Part shown: one piece after another, positions 2,498 to 24,256 of the stretch
Layout of the letters: every line of letters starts with the position of its first letter
Numbering within the stretch: the first letter of the stretch is position 1
From: Octopus sinensis
Lineage: Eukaryota
Assembly: GCF_006345805.1 (NCBI RefSeq)
Contig: NW_021827536.1
Coordinates: forward strand, 1-28,231
Direction: 5' to 3'
Length of the DNA stretch: 28,231 nt
Notes under the pieces: generated by a model
Told to the model about the DNA's origin: nothing
Database searches by the model: none
Seen by the model: only the letters and a program-made list of their open reading frames with translations
Program-made: the position numbers and the translations under genes

Positions 2498-4487
2498 ATG
2501 TCCCTCGTAATCGATCTACGAAACAGTAAATACAACTAATTAACCCCAGAAATAATGGAGGAAATGATTGACCCTCATCGCTACCAACAATCCATCCTCA
2601 TCCTCGACGAAAGGACCAAACGAATAATGTCCTGCTGCATAAAACTCCACGAATTAGCCGACAGAGGAATATGCAGTAACCCCACCAACTCATCCCCAGG
2701 CGTCGAACGTCTGGAGGCAAGGAGACAACCCCTCTCCATTAACGCCATCTACTTCATATCCCCCACCCAAGAGGTACCCCACCTCCTAACCCCAGTCCTT
2801 CGCCTACCTCATCGACGACTTTGACTCCAAGCCTGCCTACTCCTCAGCCTCCGTCTTCTCTCCCGGGGTCATCGGTGATGACGTCATCGCCACTGTGGGG
2901 CAAAATGACGTGAGGAAGTACCTCAAAAGGATGACTGAGTTGGATGTGGATTTTGTCCCTTTCTCTGCCAATGTGGCACTTTTGGACACTCCCAAGTCCT
3001 TCCAGGCGTGTTTTGGTGTCCCTCATACTATTTTCCCGCCACAATTGTTGTCGAATGTGGAGTCATTGGTGTCCTTCTGTGCCTTCCTGAGAGAAGAGCC
3101 GAACATTGCCTATTACAAGTGAGACCCCTCTATAACCAGGCCGGGCACATGTACCTACAAATTTGCCACGCTGTTGAAGGAGAGACTCGCCTCTCTCGCC
3201 AATTTGGAGGCTCAGAACAAAAACGTGGCTATTTTGGGACATTTTTAGGAGTTTGTGTCACAAAAGTCGCTCATTTTGGTGGTCGACCGCAGCATGGATG
3301 TGATAACCCCCATCATCCACTCCCTCAGACTCGAATCACTCGCTTATGACATATTGCCAATGGAGGGAAATATTTACACGTTTTTTTCCCGCCATTTTAT
3401 ATTAGGCCGTCGGGAAGTGAGAAAAAAGACGCGGGAGTGGTCCTCGACGACTTTCACCAGTTTTGGGCGAAGTACCGCCACCTTCACATCGCGGAGGCCA
3501 CCCGGTTTGTGGGTCAGTCTAATTGGGAGGGAAATATCCGCGGCCATGAAGAGTCTGACCAAGGAGGTCTCCGCGGACACAAAAACGGTGACGGCCTTCG
3601 CGGACAAAGTCAAACAAATGCCCTTCTACCGTCGACAACTGTCCCAGCTGAGTGTCCTCCTCAAAATCGCGGAGGAGTGTGTGGGGTACTGCCAAGGGGG
3701 TGGTCAGGCGGCGTGTGTGGTCGAACAGGAGTTGGTGAGTGGGGTGGATAAGAACGGAGACACAATCCGTGACTTTATGGTGACCATCCTTCCCATCATC
3801 TGTGACAAAAAAGTGTCCGTCGCCGCAAAACTCCGCGTTTTTTTTCTTTATGTCATTCAGAAAAAAGGTTCCTGTCATTTTTGGAGTGTAGGGATATCTC
3901 GGTCGAATGTGGACAGGATATTGGGCCATGCAACAATTCCGTCCTCTGATCTTGTGGCGGTGGAGAATCTGCAGAAACTTGGCGTGAGGATATTCGACGA
4001 TGACGTCATTGATTACGTAATAATATATAGGGAGGGGGGATGGTGGAGCATTACTATCGGAAGTGTCATGTGGATGTAAACCAGGAGGAGGTGTTGGTGG
4101 GTACTCGTTGGAAGCCTTCTTTGGTTAATTTGGTGAAGGTAGAGAAGTGAGTGAGTCATTTGAAGGAGACATTGTCTGGTAAGCTCAATAAGAATATGTT
4201 TTCGTTGTTGGAGGGGGGAGTGCCCACTCTGAACACCAGCAAAGTAGTGAGGTGGGTTGATTGGGGTGATTGGTAGTGCGAGGTATGGGGCGTGGGCGTC
4301 GAAGGATCCTCGTCGGGGGGAGACGAAGGCTTATTTGATTGTCTACATGATTGGAGGGATCACCCCCAGTGAGATCGCGGCCGTGAATGACCTCAATGAG
4401 GAATTGAGTGCGACCTGTCGGATTGTCCTTGTGTCTGATTTTATATCTACCTGGCCTGTATTTCTGGATAATTTACGGTCGCTTTAA
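2498..4487 (+). CDS. STXBP1: Sec1/Munc18 (SM) family syntaxin-binding protein, Munc18/ROP-like; 12 exons
   Basis: Removing 11 GT-AG introns (24,24,22,21,24,26,25,24,26,27,25 nt; e.g. 2526-2549, 3380-3405, 3505-3529, 4139-4165) gives one open frame: MSLVIDLRNKIMEEMID...RIMSCCIKLHEL...AIYFISPT...LVVDRSMDVITPIIHSL...KYRHLHIAEATREIS...TRWKP...SARYGAW...LIVYMIGGITPSE...LRSL*. These motifs parallel Munc18 (MLSSCCK, DRGFD, LRHKHIAE, SRWTP, SARYGHW, FILGG). Paralogue assignment is uncertain. Confidence 0.93.
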
Positions 4488-4798
4488 TTAACTCTAATTA
4501 ATATTTATTGATGACAATTAGTGTTATTCTCTAGGCTCATTAATTAGTGGGTATTCAAACATTAATGGGATTGTAAGGCAGTTTATCAGTCGCACCCGAT
4601 TAATTGATCTTTTTAAGTGTGTTTGTTAGTTTTTGCCATAAAATTCATTTTTGCTATTAAATTTTCAAATTGAACGTCTATTGGTCAAAGCTACTTGGAG
4701 TAAATTGAACATTTAAAAATAATTTAAAATCGATTTATTTTAAGAAAACTTTGACCTCTACATGAACGACATTTTAAACAGTCATAAAATCAAATGCT

Positions 4799-4814
4799 AA
4801 TTAGTCTTGGGACA
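4799..4814. repeat. 16-bp inverted repeat arm, left (AATTAGTCTTGGGACA)
   Basis: Exact reverse complement of TGTCCCAAGACTAATT at 6972-6987. A one-mismatch direct copy of the right arm lies at 7103-7118. Confidence 0.75.
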
Positions 4815-5126
4815 AATCACCTTAATTATCAAGGGAATATTAATGCTTTGTAAAATATCCTTTATTCCACAAAAACTGCATTTAAACGATTTTGTAATTG
4901 CACACAAGTTTTTTACAAGTTTCTTCAATACAAAATAATTTTAATTCCATGATATTTGTTGATGAAGTTTAATTTTATTAACCAAAACGAAGCTAGATTA
5001 GTTTTATATTATAAAAATTTGTTGATTATGTGCTCATACTTTGACTTTTAATTCTTTCCAAAGATTTTCAATTGGATTTAGATCTGAGGATTGACTTGCC
5101 TTCAAGGGTATTAATTAAACGTCCTT

Positions 5127-5375
5127 CTAGCGATTTTTGAGTTTTTTTGCTGTATGTTTCAGATCATTGTCCTGTTGAAATGTCCAATTTCCCACAATAC
5201 CACATTTCTTAATTGACGAAAAAATATTTTTTCCCGAAATATCACAGTATATAGAAGCATTAAATATTCTGTTTATTACATGAAGTTCCCCAACTCCCAA
5301 GAAGGAAAACACCCCCATAGCATAATACTGCCACCGCCATGTTTAACTGTTAATATGGTATTTTGTTCTTTAGGT
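5127..5375 (-). mobile_element. Tc1-like DD34E transposase fragment
   Basis: Translation [26 protein letters not shown]...WTFQQDNDLKHTAK matches the Tc1 motifs VKHGGGSVMVWGCF and FQQDNDPKHT. Confidence 0.9.
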
Positions 5376-5399
5376 CACACCATAAATCAAGGATAGAGT

Positions 5400-6430
5400 T
5401 AATCTTGTATGATTGTCTTGAAGCGGAAAGGTTTTTGCATTACATAAGTTTGTTTATTGTGTGTCGTCCGTCAAGGAAGATTCGACAGATCGGATCGACA
5501 TTTTTGTCCAGTTTGTTTTGGTAGTCGAAGAATAAAGGATGGTGCCCACAGCGAAATCTTGCAAGTTCGACTCGATCTCTAAGGCTGAGATCATTTTCAG
5601 CTGTGTATATTTTTTGAGGGTCAAAAATATTGTTTACAGTTAATGCTTTCAAGAAGGACTTTGTTAACAGTTCTTTTATGATCGATGGTTTTTTGTTAGT
5701 GAATGCGTTTAGGATACGAATGTAGTAAAGTCTTGGTGCCTTTTTGACGTTCCTGTCAGGGGTTCGTATTCTCGTAAGATTGCGCCTAGGATGGTTTTTG
5801 ATTATACATTCAGAGGCGAAAAATTGGGTTCCATAAATGTCCATTGGGTTTCATTATCTGATACATCTGGTCGGACGGTGTAGATTTCATACGACCCATA
5901 ATGATTTTGAGTGCTTGGTTTAGGATTGATTTTGATTTCTGAAAAGTGTTTTTGACAACAGGGGCGCCCATGATTGACTTGCATAGTTCAATGGTTGAAG
6001 AATATATTCTTTGTATAGAAATGTTAGGCAGTCTTTATTTTTCAAAGTGGGTTCATGTGAGTGAGCAGAGGGAATTCATGTTACATTTACATTTATAAGT
6101 CAGGTTTTCAATGTGTTGGCGAAATCATATGGAGAAATCATAGGTTATCCCGAATATTTGATTTTTTTGTGTGGGAGATTTGAATTTTGTTAGGTTTGAT
6201 TGTCGAAATGAAGTTTTGTTCTTGTATATGCATTGTTAAAAGAGGGGCTGATGATTTAGATGGTGATAGAGATAGGCCGTTTAGAGTAATCCAGTTGTAC
6301 ATAGTATCAATGAATGGTTGAACATGATGACATGGCGTTATTTGGCCCGTGTTTAATAAATTGATCGTAATATCATCTGCGTATAAGTACAGATATATAT
6401 TTTCGGGTGGTGTAGAAATGGCTATTCGTT
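5400..6430 (-). mobile_element. Degraded APE-type LINE, 3' part (RT domain 5 to C-terminal Cys/His motif), I/Jockey-like
   Basis: YADD at 6383-6372, then KIFGITYD, YASQSWAP, and LARFRCGHH...DPICRI...HTI. Contains several stops and frameshifts. Confidence 0.8.
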
Positions 6431-6477
6431 AAACAGCAATAGGTCTGGTAGATTGAATAGTTATAATACTAGTGTTT

Positions 6478-6890
6478 TATTTATTTAACCGCCAAGACCA
6501 CGATAAGAGTCAAACAAAAGTCACGTGATCCCGATGCACTCGACCAGGGACCTCATCTTCGCTCGGTGATCTTTCCACGAGCCCACAGAAGATCGCACCG
6601 GGCGGCAGGCCGTTTTTGACGGGGCATTTGCTGACGGACCGAGATTCAGCTTGATAAGGTTTTTCAGAGAAGCTGGACCGGGGCGTTCGCTATCATGCGA
6701 CCAACGATCGGTTAATCTGAGGGCCTTTTGTTGGGCCTCCTCGATTCGCCTCCTGTTGGACCACGATAACCGCGGGCCCCATGATCCGCAGGCGTAGGTG
6801 ATAGATTGTTCGAAGTGCTGGCGGTAGATATTCGCCAGTGCCGGGTGCGACCCGAACAAGATGTTCCCTTGGACGATCGCAATGACGAAT
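6478..6890 (-). mobile_element. 3' end of a second LINE (CR1/L2-like)
   Basis: IYRQ...ITYACGSWGPRL...RIEEAQQKALR resembles the post-RT motif LEYA...W.P....LE..Q..A.R. It ends in a (TAAA)n-like tail at about 6478-6487. Confidence 0.6.
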
Positions 6891-6971
6891 CAATTCAAAA
6901 TTAGTACAGTTTCATTGATCGATATGAAAATGAATCTAATTATTTTGTCAAAAAATAAATAAATAACCAAC

Positions 6972-6987
6972 TGTCCCAAGACTAATT
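6972..6987. repeat. 16-bp inverted repeat arm, right (TGTCCCAAGACTAATT)
   Basis: Exact reverse complement of 4799-4814. Confidence 0.75.
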
Positions 6988-7499
6988 GGCACCTGATATT
7001 CCTGCTCTTGAATATAAATATAGGTGCATTTTTATACTTTTTGAAAACTTAAATAAAAACAGTTATGTTAAAGAAAATGAAATTCTGTTAAAAATCAACA
7101 AGTGTCACAAGACTAATTTGACTTACTTTAAAGCGTCAGGCGTTGCACGGATCTAACCCTTGCCTAATTAAGAGGTCATTTCTTAAATTGGCCATAAAAT
7201 TTGCTAAAATGGTCAATCTACGATGGTTCACTGTATTTTTAAAACTTATTGACTACAAAGACATTATGGTCACTTTAACGTGGTGCATCATTGATAGTTT
7301 ATTAGTAAACAGGTCGTATTCATGCATTTTCTCTATTTTTATTTGTTTTAATAATTTTAGAGTTTATCCTAATTAGCATGATTTTACTGAAGTCTGATTT
7401 TTTACATTTATTAATTTATTCACACATATTTTGGTCGGGGTGTACAAAACGTCAGCCACATGCATTGATTACACCCCGTTCTCAGACCTTCCTTTATAT

Positions 7500-8560
7500 G
7501 CCTTAATAAGCAAATTAAATGAAAAACACAAAAAGCCAAAAATTCCAGATTATTCCACTATACTACTTGACAGACCCTCCCCCGATGAAGGCCTGATTAC
7601 GTTCATCAGCAAAAATATCTCATATATTGAAACATCAAACGATTTCAAATATCAAGTCGGTGAAAAAACCGAGCTAAAATCACCCAAAATAAAAAATAAC
7701 ATGAAATCCGATCTCATTATAATCAACATCTACATTCCCCCAACCTCAACTACTATTCCATGCTCATACAATCCTTATTTTAAAACTTTCAAAAGCATGA
7801 ATTGCCTCCTTCTCTGAATGCACACAGCACATCCTGGTACAAATAAACCCTAACAACTTTTGCGGCAACTTAATATGTGAACAATTAAACAATCTATTCA
7901 TCATCAACAACCTCAAAAAATACACCCACCAACCATACAAATCAAAACACAACAACACTTCTCCGGATATCTCCTTCTGCTCTCCAAACCTAACATCAAA
8001 TACCATATGGAACACAATCAATCAAATATCATGCACCAATCCTAATACAAACTCATGTTATAATCAACATTCCGAACAATAACAAGTCTATAAAAACAAA
8101 AGAGCCAAATGGAGCCTCTATAAAAACGAAACCGAAAAACTTTTCTTGGAAATTACCGGGAACAAATTCCTGTCAAATATACATAAATCCAACAAGCTTT
8201 TCGCTGATATTATCTCGAAAGCAGGGAAAAGACACATCCCCATGGGAAACATAAGGAAATACAACCCGAACTACACCAAGGAAATAGCAGATTTAATGAA
8301 AACTCGTGACAACCTCAAACACAATAAGTCTTGAAAAGGAATCACGGATATTGCCACCCGACTAAGGGAACTAAACAAGAAGATATCTAACAAACTCAAG
8401 GAAAGAAAACGAGAGTGTCACTCACACAAACCACGAGTACAGAAATACCCTCTTGACCACAATTCCAATCCATTCACCTAAAAAGAAGTAAAAAAACGTA
8501 ATTGCCAACCTCAAATTTTAAACAGAATATCTCATAAACTTCCAATTGGTAAAACGCAAC
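7500..8560 (+). mobile_element. Degraded LINE AP-endonuclease and linker fragment
   Basis: PKIPDYSTILLDRP..GLITFI...LIIINIYIPP is an APE-domain pattern. Downstream: AKWSLYKNE and AGKRHIPMG...EIADLMKTRD. Many frame disruptions. Confidence 0.75.
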
Positions 8561-8789
8561 ATGGCTTTAGACAATATCATTCAGTCGGTGGGTATCTGCA
8601 GAGTATCCACCAAATCTAAAAGAAGATCAAAAACAATAAGTTTGTAGTTCCCGGACAGTAAAAAAAAGTAAATTGACTCCTCAATGATTAGAACGAATAG
8701 GGAACAGTAAGAAACTTCCAAATCATGTCCAATTTATATCAAAGATGCAACACAGTTTTTGAAATTCTTGAATAAAGTCACATTTTTCA

Positions 8790-9560
8790 GCAAAATCTTC
8801 CCGTTCTTGGGCCATTTCGCAAATAATCCACCGATATCTCTCGTCAGTTATATAAAGTCTGTTTCTCGTCAGTTTTTTGTTAATAATGTCTATCATTTTG
8901 GCCTTAAGAGAAGCAATCTCTAATTTGAAAAACTAAAAATCACAATCCACAATCACAAACCTTAGTAAGGTGGCATTTTTCTATCTTGGGATTCTTTTCA
9001 GGCGTATTTTTAATGTTTTGTGCTCGTTTGGCATACTCGAGTGAGTTTATTGTCTCTTCTAGGCAACTTCCAGCTGGGAAAATGTTGACTATCATTTCTG
9101 TTTTAGTGGTCCCTCCAAATGAATCTTTGAGGATTCTTGCTCTCTCGTTAAGGAATCAGTTTGCTCTCTCGTTAAGGAATGTGGGGAGTTTTGGTAGTCA
9201 AAGCATAAATAACTCGTCCCAAGTCAATAAACTTTGATTTATGGAGGCTGGGAGTTAAAAACACTACATTACCCGCCTCCGGAATTCTGTAATTGCTACT
9301 CCCTGTTCGGCTACTTCCTTCAGATCCTGCAAAATCCACCTGATAACAGTCAATGAATAAAGACATGCCAAATTTAGTTTCCCTACACTAATTGAGTCAT
9401 CTCTATTTCCGCGAACTCTAAATTACTTCTTGCCGCAAACTCTTGCCAACGAAATCAACATTTTAGTCAATTTTGGAACAAGACTCCAAACGTCGCCAAA
9501 ACCATTTTGTATAATATTTGATCAATGTTCAACTCCATGCAAGATTATCCCTGGTCTAGA
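8790..9560 (-). pseudogene. KIF11: Kinesin-5 (BimC/Eg5) motor-domain and neck pseudogene fragment retaining micro-introns
   Basis: GKLNL|VDFAGSE...EAA SINQSLL.LGRVIYAL...HIP*RESKL...RILKDSFGGTTKT...LEETINSLEYAKRAQNIKNTPE...LEIASLK...RLYITDERY. Disrupted by an in-frame TAA at the Y of HIPYRESKL, a frameshift, a 24-nt-period duplication (9137-9180) and loss of the SSRSH region. Confidence 0.85.
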
Positions 9561-9942
9561 CTGGATCACTTATACTGGATGTACATGCAAATACTGTGAT
9601 ACATTAAACACCTAATATAAACGTGAATTACGTGGATATCGACGCATTTTCACGTATAGCCAGATTAAAACATTTTATGAGTAAAATTGATACTGATTGT
9701 ATTTGAAAAAGCAGTGATTGTGGATTAATGTGATGTAGATTAAGTCGATGGATGCACTTCAAAATTGTAAAAGACAAATAATCACAGAGTAAATATATAA
9801 TGTGTTAGTTTAGTAAGAGTAGTCTGCACCTCTGTCTGCCCCCATTAAGCACAGTTCAGTGCAAAGTGGAATGTTAATAATTAAATATTCGGATGACACT
9901 AATTGTCGTAAGTTATAGCGTCCGGGCCAGTTCTAAGTGTCC

Positions 9943-9969
9943 GGAGTGATAAATCGGATTTATCACTCC
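9943..9969. repeat. 27-nt palindrome (13-bp arms, 1-nt spacer)
   Basis: GGAGTGATAAATC-G-GATTTATCACTCC, ending 8 nt before the integrase ATG. Confidence 0.9.
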
Positions 9970-9977
9970 AAATCATT

Positions 9978-11120
9978 ATGATTTTGAAAACTCTTCATTT
10001 TGCAGACGATCAATTATTCTCTTATTCCAAATCAGGAACACATAAAATTGTTATATGTCCTTTTGAACATGAAAGGATTCAATCTATTCTTTGTGATGAA
10101 CATAATGAAGGACATCCTGGGTTCAATAAAATGTGTTATCTAATTTCTCAAAAATATATTGGAATTAAACAATGTATAATTCGTGATTTTGTATCAAAAT
10201 GCATACCGTGCCAATCATTTAACTCTTTAAGTACTTGTGAAAATATCAGAATGATTTCTGTGGAAAAAAAATACGAAAGATTTATCGCCGACTGTATAGA
10301 TCTAAGGCGGTATTCTGCAAATAATGACAATTTTAAATGGATACTTACTGTCATCGATGCATACACAAAGTTTGCATGGTCATTCGCGTTAGAGAATAAA
10401 ACATCACAAAGCATCTATAATGCAATTGAGAGTTTATTCCAGACTGTCGGTCCTCCAATTTATTTTCATTCGGACAATGGAAAGGAATTCCGCAACAAAG
10501 AAGTTTCAAAACTTTTTGATGATTGGAAAATAACTCCGATATATGGAAGACCAAGGCACCCACAATCTCAAGGACAAATAGAAAGATATAACCAAACTCT
10601 CAAACGTTGGTTGGGGAAGACTTTGTTCGCAACAGAATCTATAAGGTGGAGAGAAATTCTACAGAAGGTGGTGTATAAATACAACATAACTTGTCATCGC
10701 GCAACTGGAAAGTCACCATTTTGGTTAGTCTCTTTTTATTTACCCAGTCTATTTTACGGAATAACGGGTTTTAATATTTTGCCATGTGGAGGCGCAGAAG
10801 AAGAGATTAACTCAGAATCGGAAGAAACGGAATTATCCTTAGAAGTAAAAACTCATAATGAAAAGTATAAAAGAAAAGTTACAGAAGACGCAAATAAAAA
10901 TTTTCGAAAAAAAGATATCACAATTGGAGATAATGTTACAATTAAAATTGATTTCGATAAAAATATAAAAACAAGAAAATATCCACTCACTAGTTTTTTT
11001 AGCAAGGAACAATTTCTAGTAGTGGAAGAAGTTTCTCTGCATTCCGTTCTCGTTGAGAATTGCACATCTGGTGAAAGGAAGACAATTCCAAAGTCAATGA
11101 TTAAAAAAATTAACTTTTAA
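9978..11120 (+). mobile_element. Stand-alone Gypsy-like DD35E integrase/transposase (Ginger2/TDD, KRBA2/SCAND3-like) with one 24-nt intron (10724-10747)
   Basis: HHCC finger (EHNEGH...CIPC), IADCID, HSDNGKEF, and GRPRHPQSQGQIERYNQ with 35 residues between D and E. No RT or RNase H upstream. Splicing gives TGKSPFCLFYG. Confidence 0.85.
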
Positions 11121-11419
11121 AAAATTACATTTTCATTTTATATTCAATCAATTTGTAATGTTTCTTTAAAAATTGTTTCATAATATAAGTGAACTTTTGC
11201 TTTGTTTTATTCGACATAGGAGACGTTGCTTCTATACTGGAAGAAGATCATCTCGTCTAAACCCTTTTCGTCACATAAATAAGGACCGGAAGAGTTTGCA
11301 CAGAATCATATGTAGCGGTTGAATACAGACTCTGTTGAAAACTGAATTTATATTATACGAGACTGTTTGGGACAATGTTTGTAAATTTTATTATCTATTT
11401 TTATGTTTAGTTTCGGTTT

Positions 11420-11525
11420 TCGATTTAGCTCTCGAAAATCCTTCGAAGTGAACTCATTCCTCTCAACACATCGTATTGACATTGCACTGTTCCAAGAGAC
11501 GAGGCTCTCTCCATGTAAACCATAA
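11420..11525 (+). mobile_element. Short N-terminal LINE AP-endonuclease fragment
   Basis: KSFEVNSFLSTHRIDIALFQETRL matches the K..E+..FL....IDI..LQET.L motif. Confidence 0.65.
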
Positions 11526-11602
11526 CTAATTAACAATCGAAGCTATTTCTTTGTGAATTCGTGGTTAATGAAGATACATTACGTAATTCATTTAATTTTT
11601 AG

Positions 11603-11817
11603 AAGAGTCGATAGTGGAAATAGACAAGTGCAAATTTTTTCACAGAAAGTACCATCATTGGCGACCAGGCCATTGGGTATTGGGTGGAATAGACAGGGAA
11701 ACTAGAAAGTACTTTTTTGAAGAAGTTGCAGGTTCTTTTTCCATTTATCCTTTAGACAGGGCAGCGGAAACACTCAATGAAGTTATCGTTCGACGCGTAC
11801 TTCCCAAAAACTCGTAA
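11603..11817 (+). mobile_element. Merlin (IS1595/ISXO2-like) transposase fragment with a 24-nt intron (11732-11755)
   Basis: IVEIDKCKFFHRKYHH...WVLGGIDRETRKYFFEEVA|DRAAETLNEVI...VLP matches Merlin VEIDESKF..RKY.RG...WV.GG+ER.....F...V.DR.A.TL...I...+LPG. Confidence 0.85.
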
Positions 11818-11819
11818 AA

Positions 11820-12180
11820 AGGCAATTACTAAAATTGGAGATTACCGCACTTCTTTGCGGTGAAAGGAATCTATGGCCTTCAGTTTAGTATCCGAGCTCC
11901 CACATGTCAAAGAATTATAAAGTAGACAAGTTCACAAAGGCGTTGTGGAGCCTTGATCTGAGTTGGCAATTTACAGGCCGGGCTTGGAGCCAAGTTTGCA
12001 TATTCTGCTATCTTCGAGTAGAGCCCCATGTTTCTTGACATTCCTCAAAGTTTCAACAAGTCATGTTCGTTTGTTTTATCTCAGTGAATTCAATTTTGGA
12101 AGTGTTGTACGCTCAATTCTTTCTCGATCAGGTCGGCTTCCCGTCCATGAAGCTTTCAGACCGAATTCTTTTTTTCATTA
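11820..12180 (-). mobile_element. RTE-like LINE post-RT fragment
   Basis: Contains LLYNSLT...LKAIDSFHRK, matching LLY..ETW...LD.FHR+.LR. The segment 12107-12156 is homologous (inverted) to 18878-18928. Confidence 0.55.
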
Positions 12181-12789
12181 AATGATTAGGCGTTGTTAAC
12201 ATACATAAAGAATTAATGAAGAAATAATAAATTGACTGCGTGAAAAATACAAAACAATATCTCTTTGAGGAAACCTCCTTATTCTCTTTGATTGAGTCAT
12301 CTCAGGACAACCAGGACCACGAATACAAATAAAACGACCGAAAACACACCTTCTGGTCAAAAACTTTAAAATGGGAAAGAGTATATAGAATTTTAAAAAA
12401 CAGATTAGAAACAGATTAGAGGAATAAAATCGGAAAATATCACAAAAATGACGAAATTTCAGATAATTAAATCACTAAAAGAAATTTCATCACAAAATAT
12501 TCCTTCTGAATCCAATTTAATACAAAAAAATAAAACTAAACTAAATAACAAGAACACCACAACAAACTAATTCAGCGGCATCTATGCATGTGCCATAATT
12601 TATTAGGTTTGCCATCAAAAATTAAGATAATTAAACAATAATTAATGAAAAATAGTTTATAATTATTATTGAAATAATTATCTGTATCTTTTATTTAGGT
12701 TTTTCTAATCGGTCCATAAAAAGTACATCTAATTAAATTTTGTAAATTTCTAGGTTCATTTTTTACTAAGGATAAGTAAAATCATCTCT

Positions 12790-13350
12790 GAAATATATTT
12801 GATCAAAAATACTTCTTATTTAAGACGCCATGTCAAAAGTGCTTTCCATTATCAATGTCTATGCTCCTCACAGTGATATTCTCCGTCGTCAATTCGATAA
12901 GGTTGCTTTATCTGAATCTTGATCATACGGAGGGTCTGGGGTCGGAGTGATCATAAAATGATTGTTGGACGTTAAAGAGACGCTATACGTTTCTTGAATC
13001 GGTGAAATTCCTACCTGGAACTACTTTTCCTCCGTGGCGACTAGGCTCTCATGGAACTTTTTCCTGAAAGAAATCCATATAGCGGCTGGCAAACACATCA
13101 GAAAGCAGACAAATAAACCCAGTCTGGAAAGGTATGCCATCCAGATGTGTATTCACATACCGTTAAGCAAAAAGATCGTAAACTCAAAATTAAAAATAAA
13201 TATGACTGTAACAACAAATATGTATTGAAGAATGAACGTGCAAGAATACAAAGACGATTCAAGAAATTGAATTGTCAGCACGGAACTGAAGTCTTTTTTA
13301 GGAGAAATCGAAGAACTCGAGGGCGAGGCACACATGTTTCATGCAACTAC
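12790..13350 (+). mobile_element. Deleted LINE AP-endonuclease and linker fragment
   Basis: IINVYAP, then SDHKMI, then WNFFLKEIHIAAGKHI, all in the expected order. Confidence 0.55.
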
Positions 13351-14035
13351 TTAAAATAAGAAAATACAGAAAACTCAAAATCATCAACGACATTTGAAAA
13401 ATTATTCAACCCCTGACATGAACATTGAAGTTAAACTTATTAATTCAGTGATTGACAATGCCTTTTAATTGGAACATTCCTATTCGACGATGTTTCAGAA
13501 CCAACGATGGAAAAATTGTCGTTAAATTTTACGTTGAAAAGGAATTTATGGAGTCCTTTATCCACACTAAGACGCATCAAAAAGACTATTATGTATTTTA
13601 AGAAAACAGATGTGCTAACCTTAGTGCTATAAAAACTAAACCGAAATTATTTTGGATATCTCAGATTTTTCTTGAAATAATTTTTGTGGGAATTAAGTTA
13701 GATTTGATCGACGTATCAATTTAACTATTTATGTTCATTTAATTTCGCTTTATTGATGGCGAAGTATAAATTTGCAACGGCTCAAATAATAGATTCGAAA
13801 TATTTGTTTTCTTGATTTTATTTGTTCGTAAAATATGCTTTATAAACACGTTCAATCCTTCAGTCCATCCTCTAGAATAATATTTATGTAAAAATTGTCT
13901 CTAAAAACTACATCAGGCGTCGCAGAGATCTAACCCTTGGCTAATCAAAAAAATTGCCAAAACAGGAGGGTAATTCCTACAACACAATAAAAATCAGCAA
14001 ACTCGCATTTACAGGGAAAATAAGTAAATATAAAA

Positions 14036-15847
14036 TCACACTTTATCCAAATGTGCATAGACTACACGCAATTTACGACGCGGATTCCTCGACCGATTCT
14101 TCCACGGTTTGCCACACTCGTCGGAATATACCCGAGGAGGGTCACGTTGCATTGGATTGTGAGACATGTACCCATATCCAACCGACCCTTCATTCCTCCG
14201 AAAGAACACCTCGTCCAACTTATCCAACAACACGTCCTTCGTCACAGACTCCACACATTTGACGACATCCCGCACCTTCATCCCCTTCACCCTCTCCACC
14301 AGTCCAGAAATAGGCTGATACTCATCCACCGACACTCCAGGCGGGGGGTGGCAGTAAACCAGACATCCCTGAGATGATTGACCAAGCATACAGCCGAGTA
14401 GTCCTTGATCAGTCTGTGGGCAGCCTTCGCGTAGTTTGGCCGTCCTTTGCTCATCCAATTCCTCGCCTCTGCGGATTACTGCCAGTCCCCACCTGCCAGA
14501 GTCCCCAAAAAATCTTCCGTGAGTTTATACTGTGATGGTGGAGGACTATTCTCAGTGAATGTCACATTATAGAACTGCTTGAGCACGCAAATGGGAATTC
14601 GTTGGACAATCTGAATGATACATTCAAAATGTACCAGAATGGCAGGAGACATGTAATCTATCATTGAGAGGGGGCAGTATTGAGGATAGGACTAGTTCAG
14701 ACTGGTCAATCACAAAATTAGGCATGACAAGTCCTGGACAGTCACACAACATCAATTTGTTATCCTCGTGAGTTATTAAATGAGTCTGCAAGTGCTTTGT
14801 CCGGCCTGGGGTGGCTGAGACTGCTGTCTTCTGTTGTTCAGAAGAGCATTGATGGTCGAACTCTTTCCAACATTGGGATACCCAATCATCCCCACAGAAC
14901 ATGTCTCCTCACTCGACATTCCTCTCAACTTTCTTAGCAACTCATCCCGATTTAGAATTGGCCACTCCTCCCTCCTCAGCCAGCCCCCACAAGAGCAGAC
15001 CAAAAGAACACATTCACCCGATCGAGTCAAAATATTTGTTCCAGAACATTCTAGAACATTCCAGAATATTCTACCTCTGGTTGGCAGGCATGAGAAGGTC
15101 AGATTTATTCATAAGGAGAAGTACCTGCTTCCTACCATCAACTTCCTTAACATATTTCTCCAAGTCCTCACAACGAAAGAGGAGAGGATTTCGGGCATCC
15201 ACCAACTGAACCACCACGTGACTGTCCAAATAAATGAATGACGTCACCATTTCTCCACAACCCGCCACAATTGTCTCCATAAATCGATATTTCGTTCATA
15301 AGGAGTGACTCGTAGTTGGTGGGAGGATTGGATTCTACAGTCAGCAGACAGTCTACAGAGAGAGGTTGCGTCTCCAGTCGAGGAAGTAGTCCTTTTCTAT
15401 TCGGTCAAGCACCTGCTTAGTCCAATCCTTGCTCCACGGAGGTCTCCAATACTGAGGACACACAACCTTCGAGGGATTCGAAGATATTCCTTCAAATTCT
15501 CGTGATTTTCACACATTTCCTGTCGCTGGGCATCACTCAGTCCATTTTCGGTGGGGACCACAATTTTATACTCAGGACGGTCTAGAACATTCTGAGTGAG
15601 GAAACTTGCTGTGAAATCCCTGTCGGCCATTTGTGCGAGGGAAATGAACTCTTCGAGGGTACTTTGATGTGTGACTGAGATCAAAGGCGGCCGTTCTTTG
15701 ATGTGTGGGGCTGCATTTTCGTTTAGTGCCACCTGGAAGTAAATATTGAGGAAGTACAAAGTTGTTAGTGTTGTGTCTTCGCTTATTTTCTGCTCGTTTA
15801 TTACCGATTAGACTCTCTCCTAGGTTGGCTGTTCGGGGTCTTGGCAT
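14036..15847 (-). CDS. LSG1: LSG1 large-subunit GTPase (60S export factor), copy 1; frameshifted in this sequence
   Basis: At least 9 introns of 22-26 nt. Spliced motifs: LRIPRRPPW, WRRNL...TPYERNIDLWRQLWRVVE, VQLVDARNPLLFRCEDL, NKSDLL, GYPNVGKSSTINAL, VSATPGRTKH, DCPGLV, KDY..G.LVYCHPPPG, GKPWK...YAHLD. Small indels at about 14665, 14833, 14975-14995 and 15018 relative to copy 2 break the frame. Confidence 0.93.
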
Positions 15848-16049
15848 TGTTGTTGTCTAGTTTTGATAATTACAACAACAGACAACTCACACGTTTAAAT
15901 TTAAAAAAACATTAATACTTTATTAAATAAGTTTTTAATAAAATAAATACAAACAGTATAACTTTAAAATTAGCACAAATAGTTCAAACGTTTAATAATA
16001 ATAACATATAGTACGTGAAATTTCCGAGAAATGTAACAAAAATAAGTGG

Positions 16050-17400
16050 AATAGTCGCTGCACTCGTTGCCGAGCCTATTTCTCTTCTTTTATAACTTAC
16101 CTCAGTGGAGGATACATGTCCTCTGTGTGAGAACATTAATGAAGGTATATATAATGTCCTTAGTGTCGAAAAATGATTTGTGTTTCCTCGATTACATGCC
16201 TTCCAATATGTCCGAACGGCCCGATCTGAGGTTTGGTTCGTACGAGTGAGGATCTAGGCCTCCTGTGTTTATATTTATGCTTGAAGTGTCTTGTTTGAAG
16301 GTAAATAACGGGCTGGTGGAGTTTTATTGCACGTATTTGAAAGATTATGTGCTTTCCGTTCTCCCTAAGTTTAATTTGGCTTGTCATTTCAGGAATGGCA
16401 AGAAAATTAAAACATTGAAGTGGCGTTCGTAACTTATACAAAAATAACTCTCTACAGCTACTTAGTCAGAAATTTAAATATTTATTGATAGTTGAATCGT
16501 CCCCAGATGATGACTATTCAAAGACATTTGTGTGCCAATGACACCTTAATTAAGCCACAGATTGATGGGTTATCTTGTTATGTTTATTGCAAGTATTTTG
16601 TTGTTGATTAGACAGGAATATTCCAAAAGCAGCACAAGTGAGTGCATTCTGGGCCCAGTCATCACATTGGGCTGTGAGTAGGTTAGTTCCTCAAATTGCT
16701 GGTTTCCACTCGGCCCTCTCCACGGCCAATGCACCCGGGGCACTCTACATCAGATCGTGGCAGTTCCAAAAAGGTGGGAATTTGCATCGTCTATTATATA
16801 AATAGGATTTGTTGAGTCCTCAAAATGATTATTATGACAAATTGGAAGAACTTTGTGCTAAAACTTGCTGTTTTTGTTTGTTTCCAAACACACACTCTGT
16901 CGCCTCTCTGCGTGTACTGACGGGCTTCGGTTTCGTCGGCGGCAAACCAAGGCTTTGATTGCTGTTTCACTCTAAATACCTGTTTAGGTATTTATTGGGT
17001 GACATTCCGTAAAAGTCGTTGAAACTGCGTCATATGGCAATTTCACGGAAGGGAATTGGCCCAAATTAAAAAACGTGGCTGTTCTCGACGAGTATTCGAC
17101 TAATGCGATCAAGTTGTCTGTGAATAGCAACTTTTCCTCCTCCGGCTTTGCCTATTTCCTGGTTTTCTTCGCTTTTTATGTAGTAGGCACTGATAATATA
17201 CAAAACATATTCGGACAGAGGATGCTCCGTGTGCATGACGTTGCATACCTCTCTACTTTGGTCACTCTGGTGGACAATTCCGACTGTTTTGGACTCGCGA
17301 CGTTGTTCTGCAAACGGTCGTTCTGCTTCATTCGAGTCGCTCGATGTTTTGATCAGCACTCTCCGTCCTGTTTCCTGCAACTTTCGAAACTTTGGGCGAC
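16050..17400 (-). mobile_element. Possible heavily degraded LINE
   Basis: Only scattered motifs in the expected order (LQET, IISAY, KPWF, LRSG). Weak support. Confidence 0.3.
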
Positions 17401-17868
17401 AGAAGGCTTTTTTATTCAGTTTTGTTTTTTTGTATTTTTCAGATTCTGGTTTCGGCGTATTTTATGGATCAGAGACCAAATGGATGAAAAATGGTTGATG
17501 GGAGTGCTTGGAGTTGCTTCTATCAGTCAATTCGATCCCAACACTTTTCAAAAAGTGTGTTATGTGTTACTCTTCAAAAAGTGTGTCTTCATAAGCTTTG
17601 TGACTGGTTGTCCATAGTTCGTTCCAAACAGCCTAATATTTGCCATTTTTAGTTTTTGTTGGCATACGGTAACGCTAATGAACAGATTCAGACGGCAAGC
17701 GTCCGAAACTTTTTGGTGGAAAGTCCTGGTTTGGTGGTGGGAAAGTTATATCAACAGTTTTTGATTGATAATATTCATATTACTATTTCCGATAGTTGAT
17801 ATTTATTCTTTTTTAATCTATACCTTTCCAAGTTCAAAGTGGGATTTTCCAAATTCAATATGGGATTT

Positions 17869-18783
17869 TTTTTTTTATTAATGCAAATTTAATACAGTCA
17901 AATTAATTAATAGAGAATTAATGTCGTGAACTTGAGGGTTAGTCCGACGACGAAGCACTGCGGATAGAGAGGCAGTTCCCGCGAAGAATTGCACCGAGAT
18001 GCGCTGGAAAAGCCAGCTCGTCTCCCTCCGGTCATTTGTATTCTGTGAGATTCTTCCTCTCACAACCCGTAACAGATTTCTACCTTCTTTCCACCACCCC
18101 GGAGGTCTCAAAGGCTAGGGGGACAACTCAACGACGTTCGGAAGCACAGCGTACTTCGTCAACTTCCTTTCTTCTGCCAGCGCACATGCGTAGCCGGTGT
18201 ACTGGCTGTTCCTGTGAGCACAGTATCTGAAAAGGAGTCGACGCAAGTTACATCCCAAACAAGAGACCTTCCTCCTCTAAAGGGGAATATAGTCACCCGT
18301 CAGGACGCTTTCCGTCACTGCGGCAGAGCCCAATAGGTCAAGGTCGATGGGAATCCCGCAGAATCCAAGCCCTTTTCACCACTTCATTGAGGAGGACGTG
18401 GCGGGGAAATCGGCCAGCACTCCTCTACAGGACAATGCGTGTAAACCGTTCGAAGGAATCAAAAAACCACAGCGACAACGTGAGGTTGGCAGTTTCAAGT
18501 CCAAGTCGAAGACACACTCCGATACGTATAGTTTCGTCTTCCATAAGCAGACCATTGGACGCCAACGGAAGTGCGTTAGCCAGTCTCCTGAGTGAGGCGA
18601 CAGGCACAGTTCAAAAAGCCAGTTCCAACTGTCGACTCGCGTGCGAAGACTCTCCAACAGGTGTGTGCACCAGATGACATCCCAACTCTTCTGTATTGAA
18701 GGAATCTCCGGAAGGCCAAGTCCGAGCGATCTCCAGGCGAGAACAGCAACAGGGTATTCCGTAAGCTCATCAAGTTCGAGTGC
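17869..18783 (-). mobile_element. 5'-truncated CRE-like non-LTR retrotransposon with poly(A) and a 10-bp TSD
   Basis: Across frameshifts: PHSGDW.NALPLASNGLLMEDETIRIGVCLRLG, CRCG...GLHALSC, GLCRSDGKRPDG, SLVWDVTCVD, AEERKLTKY, D.RETSWLFQRISV. Poly(T) on + at 17866-17876. TATGGGATTT at both 17859-17868 and 18784-18793. Confidence 0.9.
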
Positions 18784-19289
18784 TATGGGATTTCCAAGTT
18801 AATTTTAAAATATTGAAAAAAAATCATGACTCATTTGTGTTTTTACTATTTGATAATAACTACAAGTTAATTAATTAAAAGCTTCATGGGCGGGAAGCCG
18901 ACGCGATCGAGAAAGAATTAGAGCGTACTATCGCAAGGATATCCGCTCGAAAAACCATCTCGATTTGCCGGCGTAAACGAAAAAATTAAAATGTTACGTC
19001 CTTGTAATTTAATAAAGAAGGCAATAGTCCTTGGATTATGGCTATTCAAGAGTCCTTGGAACCACCTCTTAAATCATCCTTAAAGCCTTCTTTTATCCAC
19101 CTGTATGCAGTTGTTCTTTCTATTCCGAGAGAAAATGCAACTTGATTCCAATCCCCATCATTTTCGTAAACGGTCAACAAATTTTTTCTTTTTTCAGCTA
19201 ATTCTTTCTTTTTATTACGTACATTTTGTAATGTAAGGCGATTTTAAATTAATAAATGAATTAATAATAATAATTCAATAACCGACTTG

Positions 19290-19390
19290 AAAATCCTTGA
19301 ACTAGAAAATCCCATATTGAATTTGAAAATCCCACCTTGAACTTGGAAATCCCATATTGAATTTGGAAATTCCCATATTGAACTTGGAAA
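19290..19390 (-). repeat. 20-21-bp tandem repeat (TTCCAAGTTCAATATGGGA-type), about 5 units; inverted copy at 17826-17868 plus 18794-18800
   Basis: On +: GAAAATCCCATATTGAATTT, GAAAATCCCACCTTGAACTT, GGAAATCCCATATTGAATTT, and further units. Confidence 0.85.
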
Positions 19391-19573
19391 GATATATTTG
19401 GTTTTTGAAACTGTTTTTATTCATAAAGCTGAAAGAGATTGATAGGAAATGTAACTTTAATCGGAGCCTTCTATTAAAATTAACAGCACAAATAGTCTCA
19501 CACCTAAACAATCAACACGTCTAATATTTGACTTTAAACATATAATCCAATCAGTAAATGTATAAGCCGATAA

Positions 19574-20610
19574 TTAATCAGTTGTTTCATTGACTTTTCT
19601 GTCATTATACTGTTTATATAATGCACAAATAATGTCTCCCGCAACATGATCATTGACATTGTGGGAGACCATTATCAGAGCTAAAACTCCATCAGACTGC
19701 AAGTATTCGTCAACAAAACGCAAAAAGTATCATCCGGGTCACTTCTCAGTTGAACTGGATGGATGAGCAGTCTCCCCCATTCAAATATGCTCCAAATGTT
19801 AAGACAGATCACACCTCCCAGCCAAAACCAATAAAAAATGAACATCCCCTCCAATATCCGTTCATGGAAAAAACACACTGAACTGTGTATTTTTTCCCGG
19901 CAATCTCTTCTCCCAACTCACGGATATAAAACTCACAGAGGGACTCTCGAGGGAATGCCGGAGACCATCTGCGGATTCCCGAATATAATTCTGGGCGAAT
20001 TGCCAACCATAAAACCCAAAAGTGCCACCAGAGAGGAGAATATCAGTCAACACAAACTGGAGTAGACATTGAGTAAATACAGTATTTTGCAAGTAATGTA
20101 CGTCAAAGTGAGACAATTAGTACACCACTTTTTGTATGCTCTGTACTTGAAATGCAGATTAAAATGCATAAGTGATAGTTCGACAAGTTCCTCTCTGTTT
20201 TGTGTGTCGTATTTGGAAAATAGTTCTATTAGAGATGACAAATCGAGTCCGAAGTGTCCACAGTTGAGTCTCCAGAACAGTCTGGGAAGTTGACAGAGGA
20301 ATGCAAATGTGAGGAATATAAACTGTGTCCACTGATAATACCGAGGGTGGTGTGTCCCGGATGTGTTGACAGAGTGGATGTCCACAACCCAGCAGACTGA
20401 CTGAGTATATAACACATAGTCCACTGCAATAAAGCACATTATTACCATCATCTGACAAACACATAATTGGATTGAACAAACACTGAAAAACAGTCGCAAT
20501 GACAGTAAACACAACTAACAGCAAACACGTATAAAAGTGAGTGACACGGTCATGAAATGGTCGTCTCTCTGTGGCTCAAACACACTCTTTACTACTTCCC
20601 AGAGGTCCAT
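19574..20610 (-). CDS. Innexin (invertebrate gap-junction channel), about 340 aa, one 22-nt intron, five apparent 1-nt frameshifts
   Basis: MDLWEVV...DDHF.DRVTHFYT...NPIMC...SVCWV...RYYQWTQF...LPRLFWR...KILYLLN...FPRESLCEFYIRELG...YTVQCVF...MFIFYWFW...FVDEYLQSDGVLAL. All four extracellular Cys and the YYQW signature are present. Confidence 0.9.
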
Positions 20611-20732
20611 TTCCTGTGGCGTAATTACGTAATATATATGATGTGTTTAGTCAATTTATTTCGCATGGATCCTCACGTGAAACTATCGATTTCGCAATTA
20701 AAAATGAATTTATTAGTAAGGAAGCAGACGAG

Positions 20733-23700
20733 TTATTCGACATCCTCAACTTGAGCACTGCCAGTCCCCTCAACCACTCCACGAATATCATTCAGCTGAC
20801 CCTCACTACCCACATTAGACAAAACACACCTTAGTCGAGTGAATCGAATTCCCAACAGAAAATTAAAATGTTCAACCACAGCCGCCGCTGCGATGGACGA
20901 AATTTGGCTCGATTGCTCACAATTTCAGACGCGTCGGGTTTTCTGTCAGAATTGAGCATTCTCTGCAATTCCACTGCATGGTTGGTGTAGTCCCTCAGTC
21001 GTTCACACACAGCCCTCGTCATCACGTGGTGTCCCCCAACTTGCATGACCAACCCATTCTAACCTCCTTCGAGTATATCCCACGGGCTCTTTGCTCACAG
21101 TTGATTGCCTCACGGAATCTATACACACCAGCATGGGCCTGAGCTTGCAGGACAAATCCGAATGCCAGTTTAATCCTATCAGCAGGCGAGGAGGCACCCT
21201 CCACCAGGTCCACCGCACGACTGATGTAGTCCATCCCCACATCTGTGTCGTCCATGTGGAGCATAAGCATGCCGATGGTCATCTACCAATGACGAGTCAA
21301 TATCACATTGATTCTGTAAAACTGAGGGTTGTTCTCTCCCTCCGTACAGGAGAGTGAGATAACGTACTCGCCACATAGCGTTAACAGCCAAATCGACCTT
21401 CCCCACTGTGAAGGCGTTAGTGCGAGGGATGTCTGAGTGTTGGAGAGGGAGGACTACCAAGGAGGAGATTGCATCGGGGGAATCCACTCCGGCCAGTCTC
21501 TCACACATTATCACTGCCTGTCTCTGCATTTCAAAGGCATTCACGAATTCTCCGAGAATGTAGTTCACTCGACCCAGCAAGGTCACAGCAGACACCACCA
21601 TCATGTGTAGGGGACCATAAATATGAGTCAATATCCCCAATGTCTCCGTGATCAGTTCATATCCCGCCTTCAAATGTCCTGCGGTAATCAAGTACTTGGC
21701 CTGTGCGAGACACTGCATACAGTCCACAGACTACAATACACGCCACACTACTCACTTGAGGACTCACACACTTCACACGCGGATATACCCCCACAATGTC
21801 GTCCTCGGTGAAGACGGGGTCACCGGGGGTCCCCACTTGCTCGAACACCCTCGGGTAGTCCCTGAGTGCTATCCTCACTCCCAGGACAGTGCAGAACTGC
21901 CTCAACAACACAACTCGATTGACGTGTAGTTGGTCAGTCACAACGTCGACTGAATAGCCATAGTAAGTGGCCATCTCCTCTCTCACCAGTCCCCACAGAC
22001 CATTGTAGTCCATGCTGGCCATAGTCGAGCATATTCGGGACTTGCCTTTCTTCCCCATCCTTGCAGTCCCTGGGAAAAGCAAACAGTTCATAAAATGTGA
22101 AATCGACTGGGCATTCACAGTACCAATGACACGACGGAATACATGTTTAATAGAACGTCCCACCAACTCCAACACAGCCACGTCCTACAAGGTTATCACC
22201 CAAGCACAGACTGCTAGGAATGAGTCCTTCCCCGCCAAGGCCACCTCCCCCAAATAGCGGACGTTGATTCCCCTAAAATAGACCGAGTGAGGGCAACATG
22301 GCGTGCATATTCTTGACCAATTCACTCCCACAGAACTCATAACTCAGCTCACACTCATTCACTAATAACTCCACCTTCGAATGACACACCACTCATACCA
22401 TGCTCGGGATTTGAATCAGCACTATGAACTCACACAATTCTTTGTTCAGTCTTTTTTCCTTCTTCAATGCCTCGCTCTGAGAATTCACCCAACAATCAAC
22501 CTCCACACAACACACCGATGGCTGGTAAAGGTCCGGATTAAACCCAATCTTCATCTCCGTCTCTGAAAGGGACCCCACTTCTTCCAACGCCTCTTTCCAA
22601 CAATCGGCATCAACCATATTACACAACAACCAACCATCCTCCTCAACCACTCCTTTCGATTTCTTCCGTCTGAGATATGCCTCATTCAGTTCCTTATTCT
22701 TTAATCGGGAAAAGTAATCGAGCAATTCAGGACGGACTGCGCATAATTTGTGTTCGTGTCTTCGCGGGTAATCTTTGGCTCGCATTCTTTCATCAAATTC
22801 GCCCACATCCATTCCATCCAAATAATTAATATCTGGGGGGAATGCGGTGGCCAAATCAAGAAGGTAACTTCTTCCATCACGTCCCACAATTCCCTTCGAT
22901 TCGGCCGCAGACGCCAGTTCCACCTGTTCAGTTCCATCAGAAATATGCACACTGTGGCGAACCAACATGAACTCACGCGAAAATATATCCAACTGCAAAT
23001 TTTCCGGCCAATACTACTTTGGCCATGAACTCGTCATTGGTCAGAATTGTTTTGGTGGTCAAAGTCTCCTTAGTTCCGTAAATGACCATTTCCTCCATTT
23101 TGTCCATAATGCCTGGGAGTAAGGGGGAGGGGAGACCGGCGATGAGGGACTGAGCACACACCCGTCTCCCGCAGTAGTCCACCACAACAGTCCCCAGAAA
23201 ATGGACATCCTTCTGCTCAACAGAAGAGAAAGCAGCAATTCCCTGAATATCCAAACTCTGGGCAGAATGGGCGGCCGAATCACCCCCCACCTGAGTATAC
23301 GACTGAGCCACATCACACGCATTCGAAAAAAACATGTTGTTCCAAATATACACGTTGTTTCTACGGAATGAAGGGAATCGACGACCTCTCATTCTCACTG
23401 GGGTTGGCTGCCATGATGCACCCATCAGTCACACTACAACAACCCAGCACGGCTGTCCCCAACATATCACAGTGGACCTTCCAATTAATAAACATGGAAA
23501 ACTCTAAAAATATTTCTATCGCGGAAAATCCTCTCCCAGGGAGTATTAGTGGGCAGGTCTCGGGCAGATTGTAATTCCTCATTCCAATCACGGATATTGC
23601 AGGGGAGGTTGTCCTCAATCCCCAGTCGATTGGAAAACGCGTCCTCTGCTCTCAAATAGTCGGGGCAGTGAGCAATTGGAGGACTAAACCACGTGTAGTA

Positions 23701-23853
23701 CTGATGAGGAGTTGGGAGTCGTTCAAGGGAGTCCCTCGACCTCCTCCTCTCTACCAACCCCCCATAAACACGTTTAAAGTGGTGGGATATCTAAATAGTT
23801 CAAAACTAATCAACATTTTGGAGAAGATCGACAAGTGAGTGGTGGACTGTCGA
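20733..23853 (-). CDS. CLUH: Clustered mitochondria protein (CLU1/clueless/TIF31); lacks its N-terminal part at the duplication junction; about 15 micro-introns
   Basis: HSLVDLL, ERLPTP, RAEDAFSNRLG, RDWNEELQSARDLP, IWNNMFFS, VVDYCGRRVCAQS, GIVGRDGRSYLLDL, GINVRYLG, ELVGRSIKHVFR and the C-terminal TPR region all match the CLU family. Frameshifts at about 21418, 21338 and 21035. The exact stop codon depends on two inferred 3' introns. Confidence 0.9.
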
Positions 23854-24256
23854 ATTTTGGTTAGTCCCTTTTTATTTACCCAGTCTATTTTACGGAATAA
23901 CGGGTTTTAATATTTTGCCATGTGGAGGCGCAGAAGAAGAGATTAACTCAGAATCGGAAGAAACGAAATTATCCTTAGAAGTAAAAACTCATAATGAAAA
24001 GTATAAAAGAAAAGTTACAGAAGACGCAAATAAAAATTTTCGAAAAAAAGATATCACAATTGGAGATAATGTTACAATTAAAATTGATTTCGATAAAAAT
24101 ATAAAAACAAGAAAATATCCACTCACTAGTTTTTTTAGCAAGGAACAATTTCTAGTAGTGAAAGAAGTTTCTCTGCATTCCGTTCTCGTTGAGAATTGCA
24201 CATCTGGTGAAAGGAAGACAATTCCAAAGTCAATGATCAAAAAAATTAACTTTTAA
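23854..24256 (+). mobile_element. 5'-truncated duplicate of the integrase (intron plus last exon only)
   Basis: Matches 10718-11120 with a few substitutions. Confidence 0.9.

Follow-up and report, generated by a model that had tools for sequence, protein, structure and literature searches.

The window analysed here spans the whole of record VCDQ01002448.1 (28,231 bp) in assembly GCA_006345805.1, the Octopus sinensis assembly given in the Octopus vulgaris genome paper (PMC10700109). It carries a Sec1/Munc18 gene, two copies of LSG1 (large-subunit GTPase 1), a truncated CLU/CLUH (clustered mitochondria) gene, part of an innexin gene and a kinesin-5 pseudogene fragment, and all of them are interrupted by extremely short introns. 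In a 5.6-kb stretch of the deposited contig, the sole annotated gene call is a bare open reading frame (ORF) of 191 amino acids. We placed the introns with a self-written, homology-guided protein-to-DNA spliced aligner that demanded only GT..AG boundaries at a length of 12–1000 nucleotides (nt) and charged a flat penalty per intron; a frameshift-aware version allowed introns of 15–1000 nt. As guides for splicing we used homologues identified by PDB alignments and by scanning 1.84 billion proteins in full with HMMER.

The final set comprises 36 introns (Sec1 11, LSG1 9, CLU 13, innexin 2, kinesin-5 pseudogene 1), ranging from 21 to 27 nt with a mean of 24.44 nt and a standard deviation of 1.40. 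The most frequent length is 24 nt (13 of 36), followed by 25 nt (10 of 36). The initial annotation, made from the sequence alone, had proposed about 40 introns of 21–29 nt with a mode of 24–25 nt; the mode holds, and the count and range are replaced by the figures above. All 36 introns begin with GT and end with AG, which is weak evidence on its own because the aligner imposed those boundaries. The length distribution is more telling. Among the GT..AG pairs of 15–1000 nt within these genes, about 1% measure 21–27 nt (65 of 5550, 53 of 4907 and 110 of 12602), whereas this band holds every placed intron of Sec1 and LSG1. Removal of the introns yields ORFs collinear with the orthologues of Sec1, LSG1, CLU and innexin. 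As far as genomic sequence can establish it, the segments are thus confirmed as real, uniformly tiny and numerous introns, well above chance. Longest-ORF dynamic programming over GT..AG candidates gave wrong models, since introns of a length divisible by three were read through and introns of 15–20 nt were invented, and it was replaced by homology-guided spliced alignment. When frameshifts were not modelled, alignment yielded spurious CLU ‘introns’ of 12–16 nt and one of 179 nt in the first LSG1 copy; these were explained by 1-nt frameshifts.

The Sec1/Munc18 (syntaxin-binding protein) gene at 2498–4487 on the forward strand consists of 12 exons and 11 micro-introns and encodes a spliced product of 572 amino acids, read in the standard genetic code up to a TAA stop. 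Spliced alignment to squid s-Sec1 places ten introns of 21–27 nt, at 2676–2699 (24 nt), 2774–2795 (22 nt), 3119–3139 (21 nt), 3225–3251 (27 nt), 3380–3405 (26 nt), 3505–3529 (25 nt), 3868–3891 (24 nt), 4005–4030 (26 nt), 4139–4165 (27 nt) and 4252–4276 (25 nt). An eleventh, of 24 nt at 2526–2549, is required for joining the ATG exon and, if retained, leads to a stop at codon 13. The number and size range given for this gene in the initial annotation are thereby recovered. The spliced protein matches Pfam Sec1 in one stretch (positions 2–574/575, 262.8 bits), compared with 164.6 bits in two stretches for the naive longest-ORF model, and the match to squid s-Sec1 rises from 193.8 bits for the naive model to 303.6 bits after splicing. 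Introns 2 (2676–2699) and 8 (3868–3891) are multiples of three and contain no stop; if retained, each corresponds to an exact gap of eight residues relative to both squid and rat Munc18. The GC skew reverses within the Sec1 gene, from −0.18 (2001–3000) to +0.25 (4001–5000). Its introns track this local composition: those near the start of the gene are C-rich (..CCCCAG), those near its 3′ end are G-rich, and intron skew correlates with that of the flanking exons (r=0.44).

LSG1 is present in two copies, both on the reverse strand. Copy 1 (14036–15847) contains nine micro-introns and its frame is broken by small indels; copy 2 (27176–28231) is cut by the contig end and has an intact frame and the same four introns. 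Alignment to human LSG1 places six plus three, hence nine, introns of 22–26 nt, reproducing an earlier claim for this gene. They lie at 15733–15757 (25 nt), 15582–15605 (24 nt), 15444–15466 (23 nt), 15335–15356 (22 nt), 15222–15247 (26 nt), 15051–15074 (24 nt), 14611–14634 (24 nt), 14469–14492 (24 nt) and 14369–14391 (23 nt), the last four corresponding to 28193–28216, 27751–27774, 27609–27632 and 27509–27531 in copy 2. Joining the N-terminal part of copy 1 to copy 2 gives an ORF of 532 amino acids. The view that these genes have remained intron-rich, with introns shortened rather than lost, fits the density of 6.4 introns per kb of coding sequence in Sec1 (11 in 572 codons) and 5.6 in LSG1 (9 in 532 codons).

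The two LSG1 copies belong to a direct repeat: the segment 10718–15087 recurs at 23854–28229 with 99.4% identity and a period of 13,136–13,143 nt, reaching the contig end. The 29 differing alignment columns comprise 15 substitutions and small indels. A cluster of seven 1-nt deletions and one 5-nt insertion relative to copy 2, with not a single substitution among them, lies in 350 nt of copy 1 exon sequence (14664–15017). The arrangement fits a tandem duplication with a period of about 13.14 kb, the second unit of which would run off the contig end. A circular molecule was considered as the source of the repeat and rejected, because only 10718–15087 is repeated and not the entire contig. For the indels of LSG1 copy 1 and of CLU, either degeneration after duplication or errors in the long-read consensus may be responsible.

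The CLU gene occupies approximately 20733–23860 on the reverse strand, where the duplication junction truncates it on the 5′ side, and holds 13 firm micro-introns of 24–27 nt, defined as those that recur across alignments to 20 homologues. Best supported are the introns at 23478–23502 (25 nt, 20 of 20 homologues), 23361–23385 (25 nt, 18 of 20), 23113–23136 (24 nt, 17 of 20), 23791–23814 (24 nt, 16 of 20) and 21283–21306 (24 nt, 14 of 20), followed by 22273–22297 (25 nt, 12 of 20) and 21731–21755 (25 nt, 11 of 20). The 27-nt intron at 22185–22211 is placed by 9 of 20 homologues, and seven more use the same acceptor; that at 21433–21457 (25 nt, 8 of 20) restores the motif RVRYLTLLYGG. Two introns have alternative boundaries: 22993–23017 measures 25 nt, or 22 nt with an alternative donor, its acceptor being found with 15 of 20 homologues, and 22375–22398 measures 24 nt, or 30 nt with an alternative acceptor (7 and 5 of 20, respectively). 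The intron at 21040–21063 (24 nt, 6 of 20) is followed by a 1-nt frameshift in a run of five Gs. Weaker is the 24-nt intron at 22477–22500, a multiple of three that contains no stop and is placed by 6 of 20 homologues, the best-scoring ones among them. Set against the roughly 15 CLU introns of 22–27 nt proposed initially, the size class is borne out and the count was slightly high.

Two 1-nt frameshifts occur in G runs of the CLU gene, near 21346 and 21030, in exons that are otherwise well conserved. The C-terminal end is poorly conserved, and its last exon or exons, which lack a firm model, may hold an intron of 51–74 nt. Homology begins only at about residue 210–265 of the homologues, and the N-terminal part was found nowhere in the window. 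At 23853/23854, CLU borders on the C-terminal portion of an ORF for a retroelement integrase; the duplication junction cuts the gene, so that this copy is without its N-terminal 200-plus residues. The nearest protein to a CLU exon, at 38% identity, is labelled UNVERIFIED_CONTAM in an Acipenser sinensis assembly, an entry that is itself a case of foreign DNA, from a different organism, concealed within the genome of a host.

The N-terminal half of an innexin gene lies at 20050–20610 on the reverse strand and gives 171 amino acids after splicing; its downstream half has no model. Removing the 22-nt intron at 20424–20445, which had been proposed before, produces a single Pfam Innexin match of 70.5 bits (positions 4–176), in place of matches of 45.9 and 16.8 bits in two different reading frames. 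A tentative second intron of 26 nt at 20567–20592 joins the ATG exon. The kinesin-5 (KIF11-like) fragment at 8943–9387, also on the reverse strand, is a motor-domain pseudogene. Here, excision of a 25-nt intron at 9248–9272 gives EAASINQSLLT, to be compared with EAGNINQSLLT in KIF11. Within 9120–9272, a nonsense TAA replaces the tyrosine of the PYRESKLT motif; in addition, INQSLLT is followed by a 1-nt frameshift, and a stretch of 24 nt (ATTCCTTAACGAGAGAGCAA..) is duplicated in tandem. Three introns of 25–29 nt had been assigned to this pseudogene, and only the 25-nt one was found. Two transposase introns of 24 nt each could not be confirmed either. A 24-nt GT..AG segment at 11732–11755 on the forward strand fits by eye, and it was left out of the count because its unclassified ORF has no Pfam match: the transposase label for 11596–11814 found no Pfam support even at E=5.

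The effect of intron retention on the reading frame was counted on an earlier set of 36 introns, in which this transposase candidate stood in place of the 22-nt innexin intron. Eighteen of the introns in that set have lengths that are not multiples of three, ten are multiples of three with an in-frame stop, and eight are open multiples of three, so retention breaks the frame in 28 of 36 cases. Retention of any open 24-nt intron would add eight residues in frame. Multiples of three are not depleted among the intron lengths (17 of 36 in the final set, with a mode of 24 nt). This is unlike Paramecium, where introns in multiples of three are depleted.

To characterize the splice signals, we compared the 33 introns of Sec1, LSG1 and CLU with 148 exonic GT..AG decoys of the same lengths, using features to which the aligner had no access. 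An A at positions +16 to +18 is present in 30 of 33 introns (about 91%) and 81 of 148 decoys (p=6e-5), and a pyrimidine at −3, giving a YAG acceptor, in 26 of 33 introns (about 79%) and 38 of 148 decoys (p=2e-8). An A at +3 occurs in 12 of 33 introns and 10 of 148 decoys (p=4e-5), and the T content is 36% in introns as opposed to 25% in decoys. The A at +16 to +18, the YAG acceptor and the T-richness relative to decoys indicate real introns with weak but non-random signals, rather than segments set apart by length alone. Across all 36 introns, 33 carry an A at +16 to +18. The frequency of A is highest at +16/+17 when counted from the 5′ end, and at −9/−8 when counted from the 3′ end. A yTnAy branch consensus is found in only 13 of 36 introns, as against 7.3 ± 2.3 in shuffled sequences. 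Position +3 is A in 15, T in 10, G in 7 and C in 4 introns, and there is no consensus beyond it. The splice signals are hence reduced to about GTa...AG, as in the dicyemid regime.

These signals beyond length weaken the earlier idea that the introns are defined by their length, which is partly contradicted, and nothing testable on one contig supports the accompanying idea of a remodelled spliceosome. The introns are most likely ordinary U2-type GT–AG spliceosomal introns reduced to a narrow class of 21–27 nt. Their recognition may involve a weak GT(A) at the donor, the YAG acceptor, T-richness and a putative branch-type A, whose position is fixed at about 16–18 nt downstream of the 5′ end and thus some 8 nt short of the 3′ end. 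Because each of the signals is weak, this fixed spacing probably contributes to recognition. The machinery itself is probably a conventional U2-dependent spliceosome. Hadjez et al. (2026) reported that U2 small nuclear RNA and U2AF are conserved in myxozoans, which argues for conventional U2-dependent splicing in myxobolids, and that the A residues upstream of the acceptor behave alike in D. japonicum and myxobolids (PMC13644364).

Whose introns are these? Comparison of the proteins establishes that they are not cephalopod. The Munc18 of the contig is 30.6% identical to squid s-Sec1 and 31.1% identical to rat Munc18-1, while the squid and rat proteins share 67.5%. Being equally far from both, it is not a cephalopod gene, since one would expect the octopus orthologue to resemble the squid protein much more closely. 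A conserved LSG1 exon, looked up among 5.8 billion proteins, retrieved only itself at 100%, the next entries reaching at most 59% identity. The provisional Sec1 model and the innexin fragments gave no match in a homologue search whose word index misses proteins this divergent. The cluster names of the best CLU and LSG1 matches offered no taxonomic clue, and exact look-ups of three other ORFs in the window returned no record. Transfer RNA and Rfam scans of the whole window were empty, leaving no RNA marker for taxonomy.

Micro-introns of this kind are not new, having already been described in dicyemids. The initial annotation was right in that dicyemids possess tiny introns (PMC2222250, PMC6543705, PMC6736024, PMC13644364). 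Dicyemid introns of about 26 nt have been known since 2007–2010, and genome-wide since 2019 (PMC2222250, PMC6543705, PMC6736024). Aruga (2007) described Dicyema introns of 26.2 ± 1.9 nt and ‘uniform length’ in genes for highly divergent proteins (PMC2222250), and Zverkov (2019) found a dicyemid median of 27 nt with two thirds of the introns below 30 nt (PMC6543705). Myxobolid myxozoans were added in 2026 as a second animal group, and introns below 30 nt are known among animals from these two groups only (PMC13644364). Published dicyemid genes contain 4.9–6.2 introns each, and the D. japonicum genome has a GC content of 36.7% and 49% repeats with many copies of LINE elements. Ogino (2010) is reportedly another of the dicyemid micro-intron studies, as is Lu (2019, PMC6736024).

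The contig resembles dicyemids in its narrow band of GT–AG introns of about 24–27 nt (24.4 ± 1.4 nt, against the published 26.2 ± 1.9 nt and median of 27 nt), its intron-rich genes, its very divergent proteins, a repeat-rich genome of about 37–39% GC and the host, Octopus sinensis. It differs in that the published mean is about 2 nt longer, in comparison with a contig sample that is small and possibly from another species, and in being filed under the name of the host, with no demonstrated identity to a published Dicyema sequence. Mobile-element remnants lie at 9978–11120 on the forward strand and at 6141–6428 and 5040–5342 on the reverse strand; they include a reverse-transcriptase fragment and an ORF of 380 amino acids in which a zinc-binding domain of integrase type and an rve core are recognized. 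The GC content of the window is 39%. Dicyemids inhabit the kidneys of cephalopods (PMC2222250, PMC6736024): O. sinensis itself was the source of D. japonicum (PMC6736024), and D. acuticephalum was obtained from octopus bought in Osaka (PMC2222250). We therefore consider it likely that the contig stems from the nuclear genome of a dicyemid mesozoan, in all probability a Dicyema species living in the renal sac of O. sinensis, and that its genes carry shortened U2-type introns. The Dicyema DNA would have been sequenced together with that of the octopus and have remained in the assembly unplaced, as a contig of its own. This origin is deduced from host, intron regime and divergence, not from sequence identity.

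Several observations weigh against this assignment or the introns on which it builds. There is no direct match to any Dicyema sequence, in a comparison that included no dicyemid genome or protein, and the large protein collection yielded no close relative of the contig proteins, which is unexpected if D. japonicum data are part of that collection and the species is the same. The intron calls draw on genomic sequence and homology. For the eight open introns with lengths in multiples of three, one of which is the uncounted transposase candidate, the support consists of alignment gaps and shared features. Several of the contig genes contain frameshifts, and some may be pseudogene copies.

Other micro-intron systems fit the contig less well. 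Paramecium and other ciliates (20–35 nt; 15–16 nt in Stentor) share the size class and the narrow distribution, but they reassign stop codons and lack innexins, whereas the 572-codon Sec1 ORF uses standard stops and an animal-specific innexin is present. Chlorarachniophyte nucleomorphs likewise show extreme shortening with introns kept; their introns are shorter still (18–21 nt) and reside in a tiny, AT-rich algal genome, in contrast to a contig with the animal-specific genes for innexin and Munc18. Myxobolids come closer, with a median of 22–27 nt, a 5′ signal cut to GTa, and weak A residues upstream of AG whose distance from AG rises with intron length (PMC13644364). The wording of that study suggests that more than AG is kept in the myxobolid 3′ motif, which is not described there, so the YAG of the contig is not comparable. 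An origin from some other animal with ultra-short introns in the octopus sample, be it a myxobolid or a member of an unsampled lineage, is nonetheless unlikely. In its favour, myxobolids show such intron lengths and reduced splice motifs just as typically, no dicyemid sequence was matched, and the best CLU match is the flagged contaminant of a sturgeon assembly, at only 38% identity. Yet myxobolids are cnidarians that alternate between fish and annelid hosts, whereas dicyemids live in cephalopod kidneys and O. sinensis hosts D. japonicum. Myxozoan genomes are also compact, with relatively few transposable elements and a lower GC content (29% in H. salminicola), as opposed to an octopus record of 39% GC with several element remnants, reverse transcriptase and integrase among them.

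The contig was deposited in an octopus assembly and, according to the record count, retained in two assembly versions, as would be expected of genuine O. sinensis nuclear DNA, in the form of very divergent paralogues or integrated parasite DNA. The Munc18 identities given above speak against this, as does the fact that LSG1 and CLU are normally single-copy housekeeping genes; moreover, the contig is a short, separate record in which nothing is tied to octopus sequence. Cephalopod introns, furthermore, run to kilobases. We regard an octopus origin as highly improbable. That no relative among 5.8 billion proteins exceeds 59% identity leaves room for two further readings, in which the contig would not be a loose contaminant from a sequenced Dicyema species: the integration of parasite DNA with whole intron-bearing genes into the octopus genome, or a third, unsampled animal lineage with ultra-short introns. 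These are very unlikely even when taken together. Barely credible is the proposal that the segments are not introns at all and represent assembly insertions, sequencing artefacts or pseudogene debris with chance GT/AG flanks. The small indels, frameshifts and pseudogenes of the contig and the GT..AG boundaries forced by the aligner could be cited in its favour, but 36 segments fall into a 7-nt length band and are set apart from exonic decoys by the A at +16 to +18, YAG and T-richness (p from 6e-5 to 2e-8). In addition, their removal gives full-length Sec1 and LSG1 that end where the homologues end, and both copies of the duplicated part of LSG1 have identical introns.

The remainder of the contig contains little that can be classified. 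No recognizable gene was found at 15900–19000 or 1–2400. The reverse-strand ORFs at 27–443, which has no Pfam match, and 18118–18299 have the motif ..LVWD.TC.D(S/T)F...AE(E)RK..KY..L in common, which suggests that they are copies of one repeat family. A Tc1/mariner DDE-like stretch, recognized by eye (FQQDNDLKHT...QSSDLNPIENLW), contains a frameshift at a run of seven As and has no Pfam match.

The issue raised by this contig is one of provenance, namely parasite contamination, and not a novel splicing regime in a typical animal. What is new and useful is that an octopus-labelled contig most likely represents parasite DNA that was not removed from a public reference assembly. The assembly is widely used, is cited in several papers by the RefSeq accession GCF_006345805, and appears to carry parasite contigs that could pass for octopus genes, horizontal transfer or an oddity of cephalopod splicing. 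The same contigs would be a free additional source of dicyemid genomic sequence, although seeing such genes at all requires small-intron-aware annotation with a minimum intron length of about 15 nt. For the biology of splicing, the contig provides independent confirmation that animal introns of 21–27 nt exist, with weak but real signals in the form of a YAG acceptor and an A whose spacing from the 5′ end is fixed.

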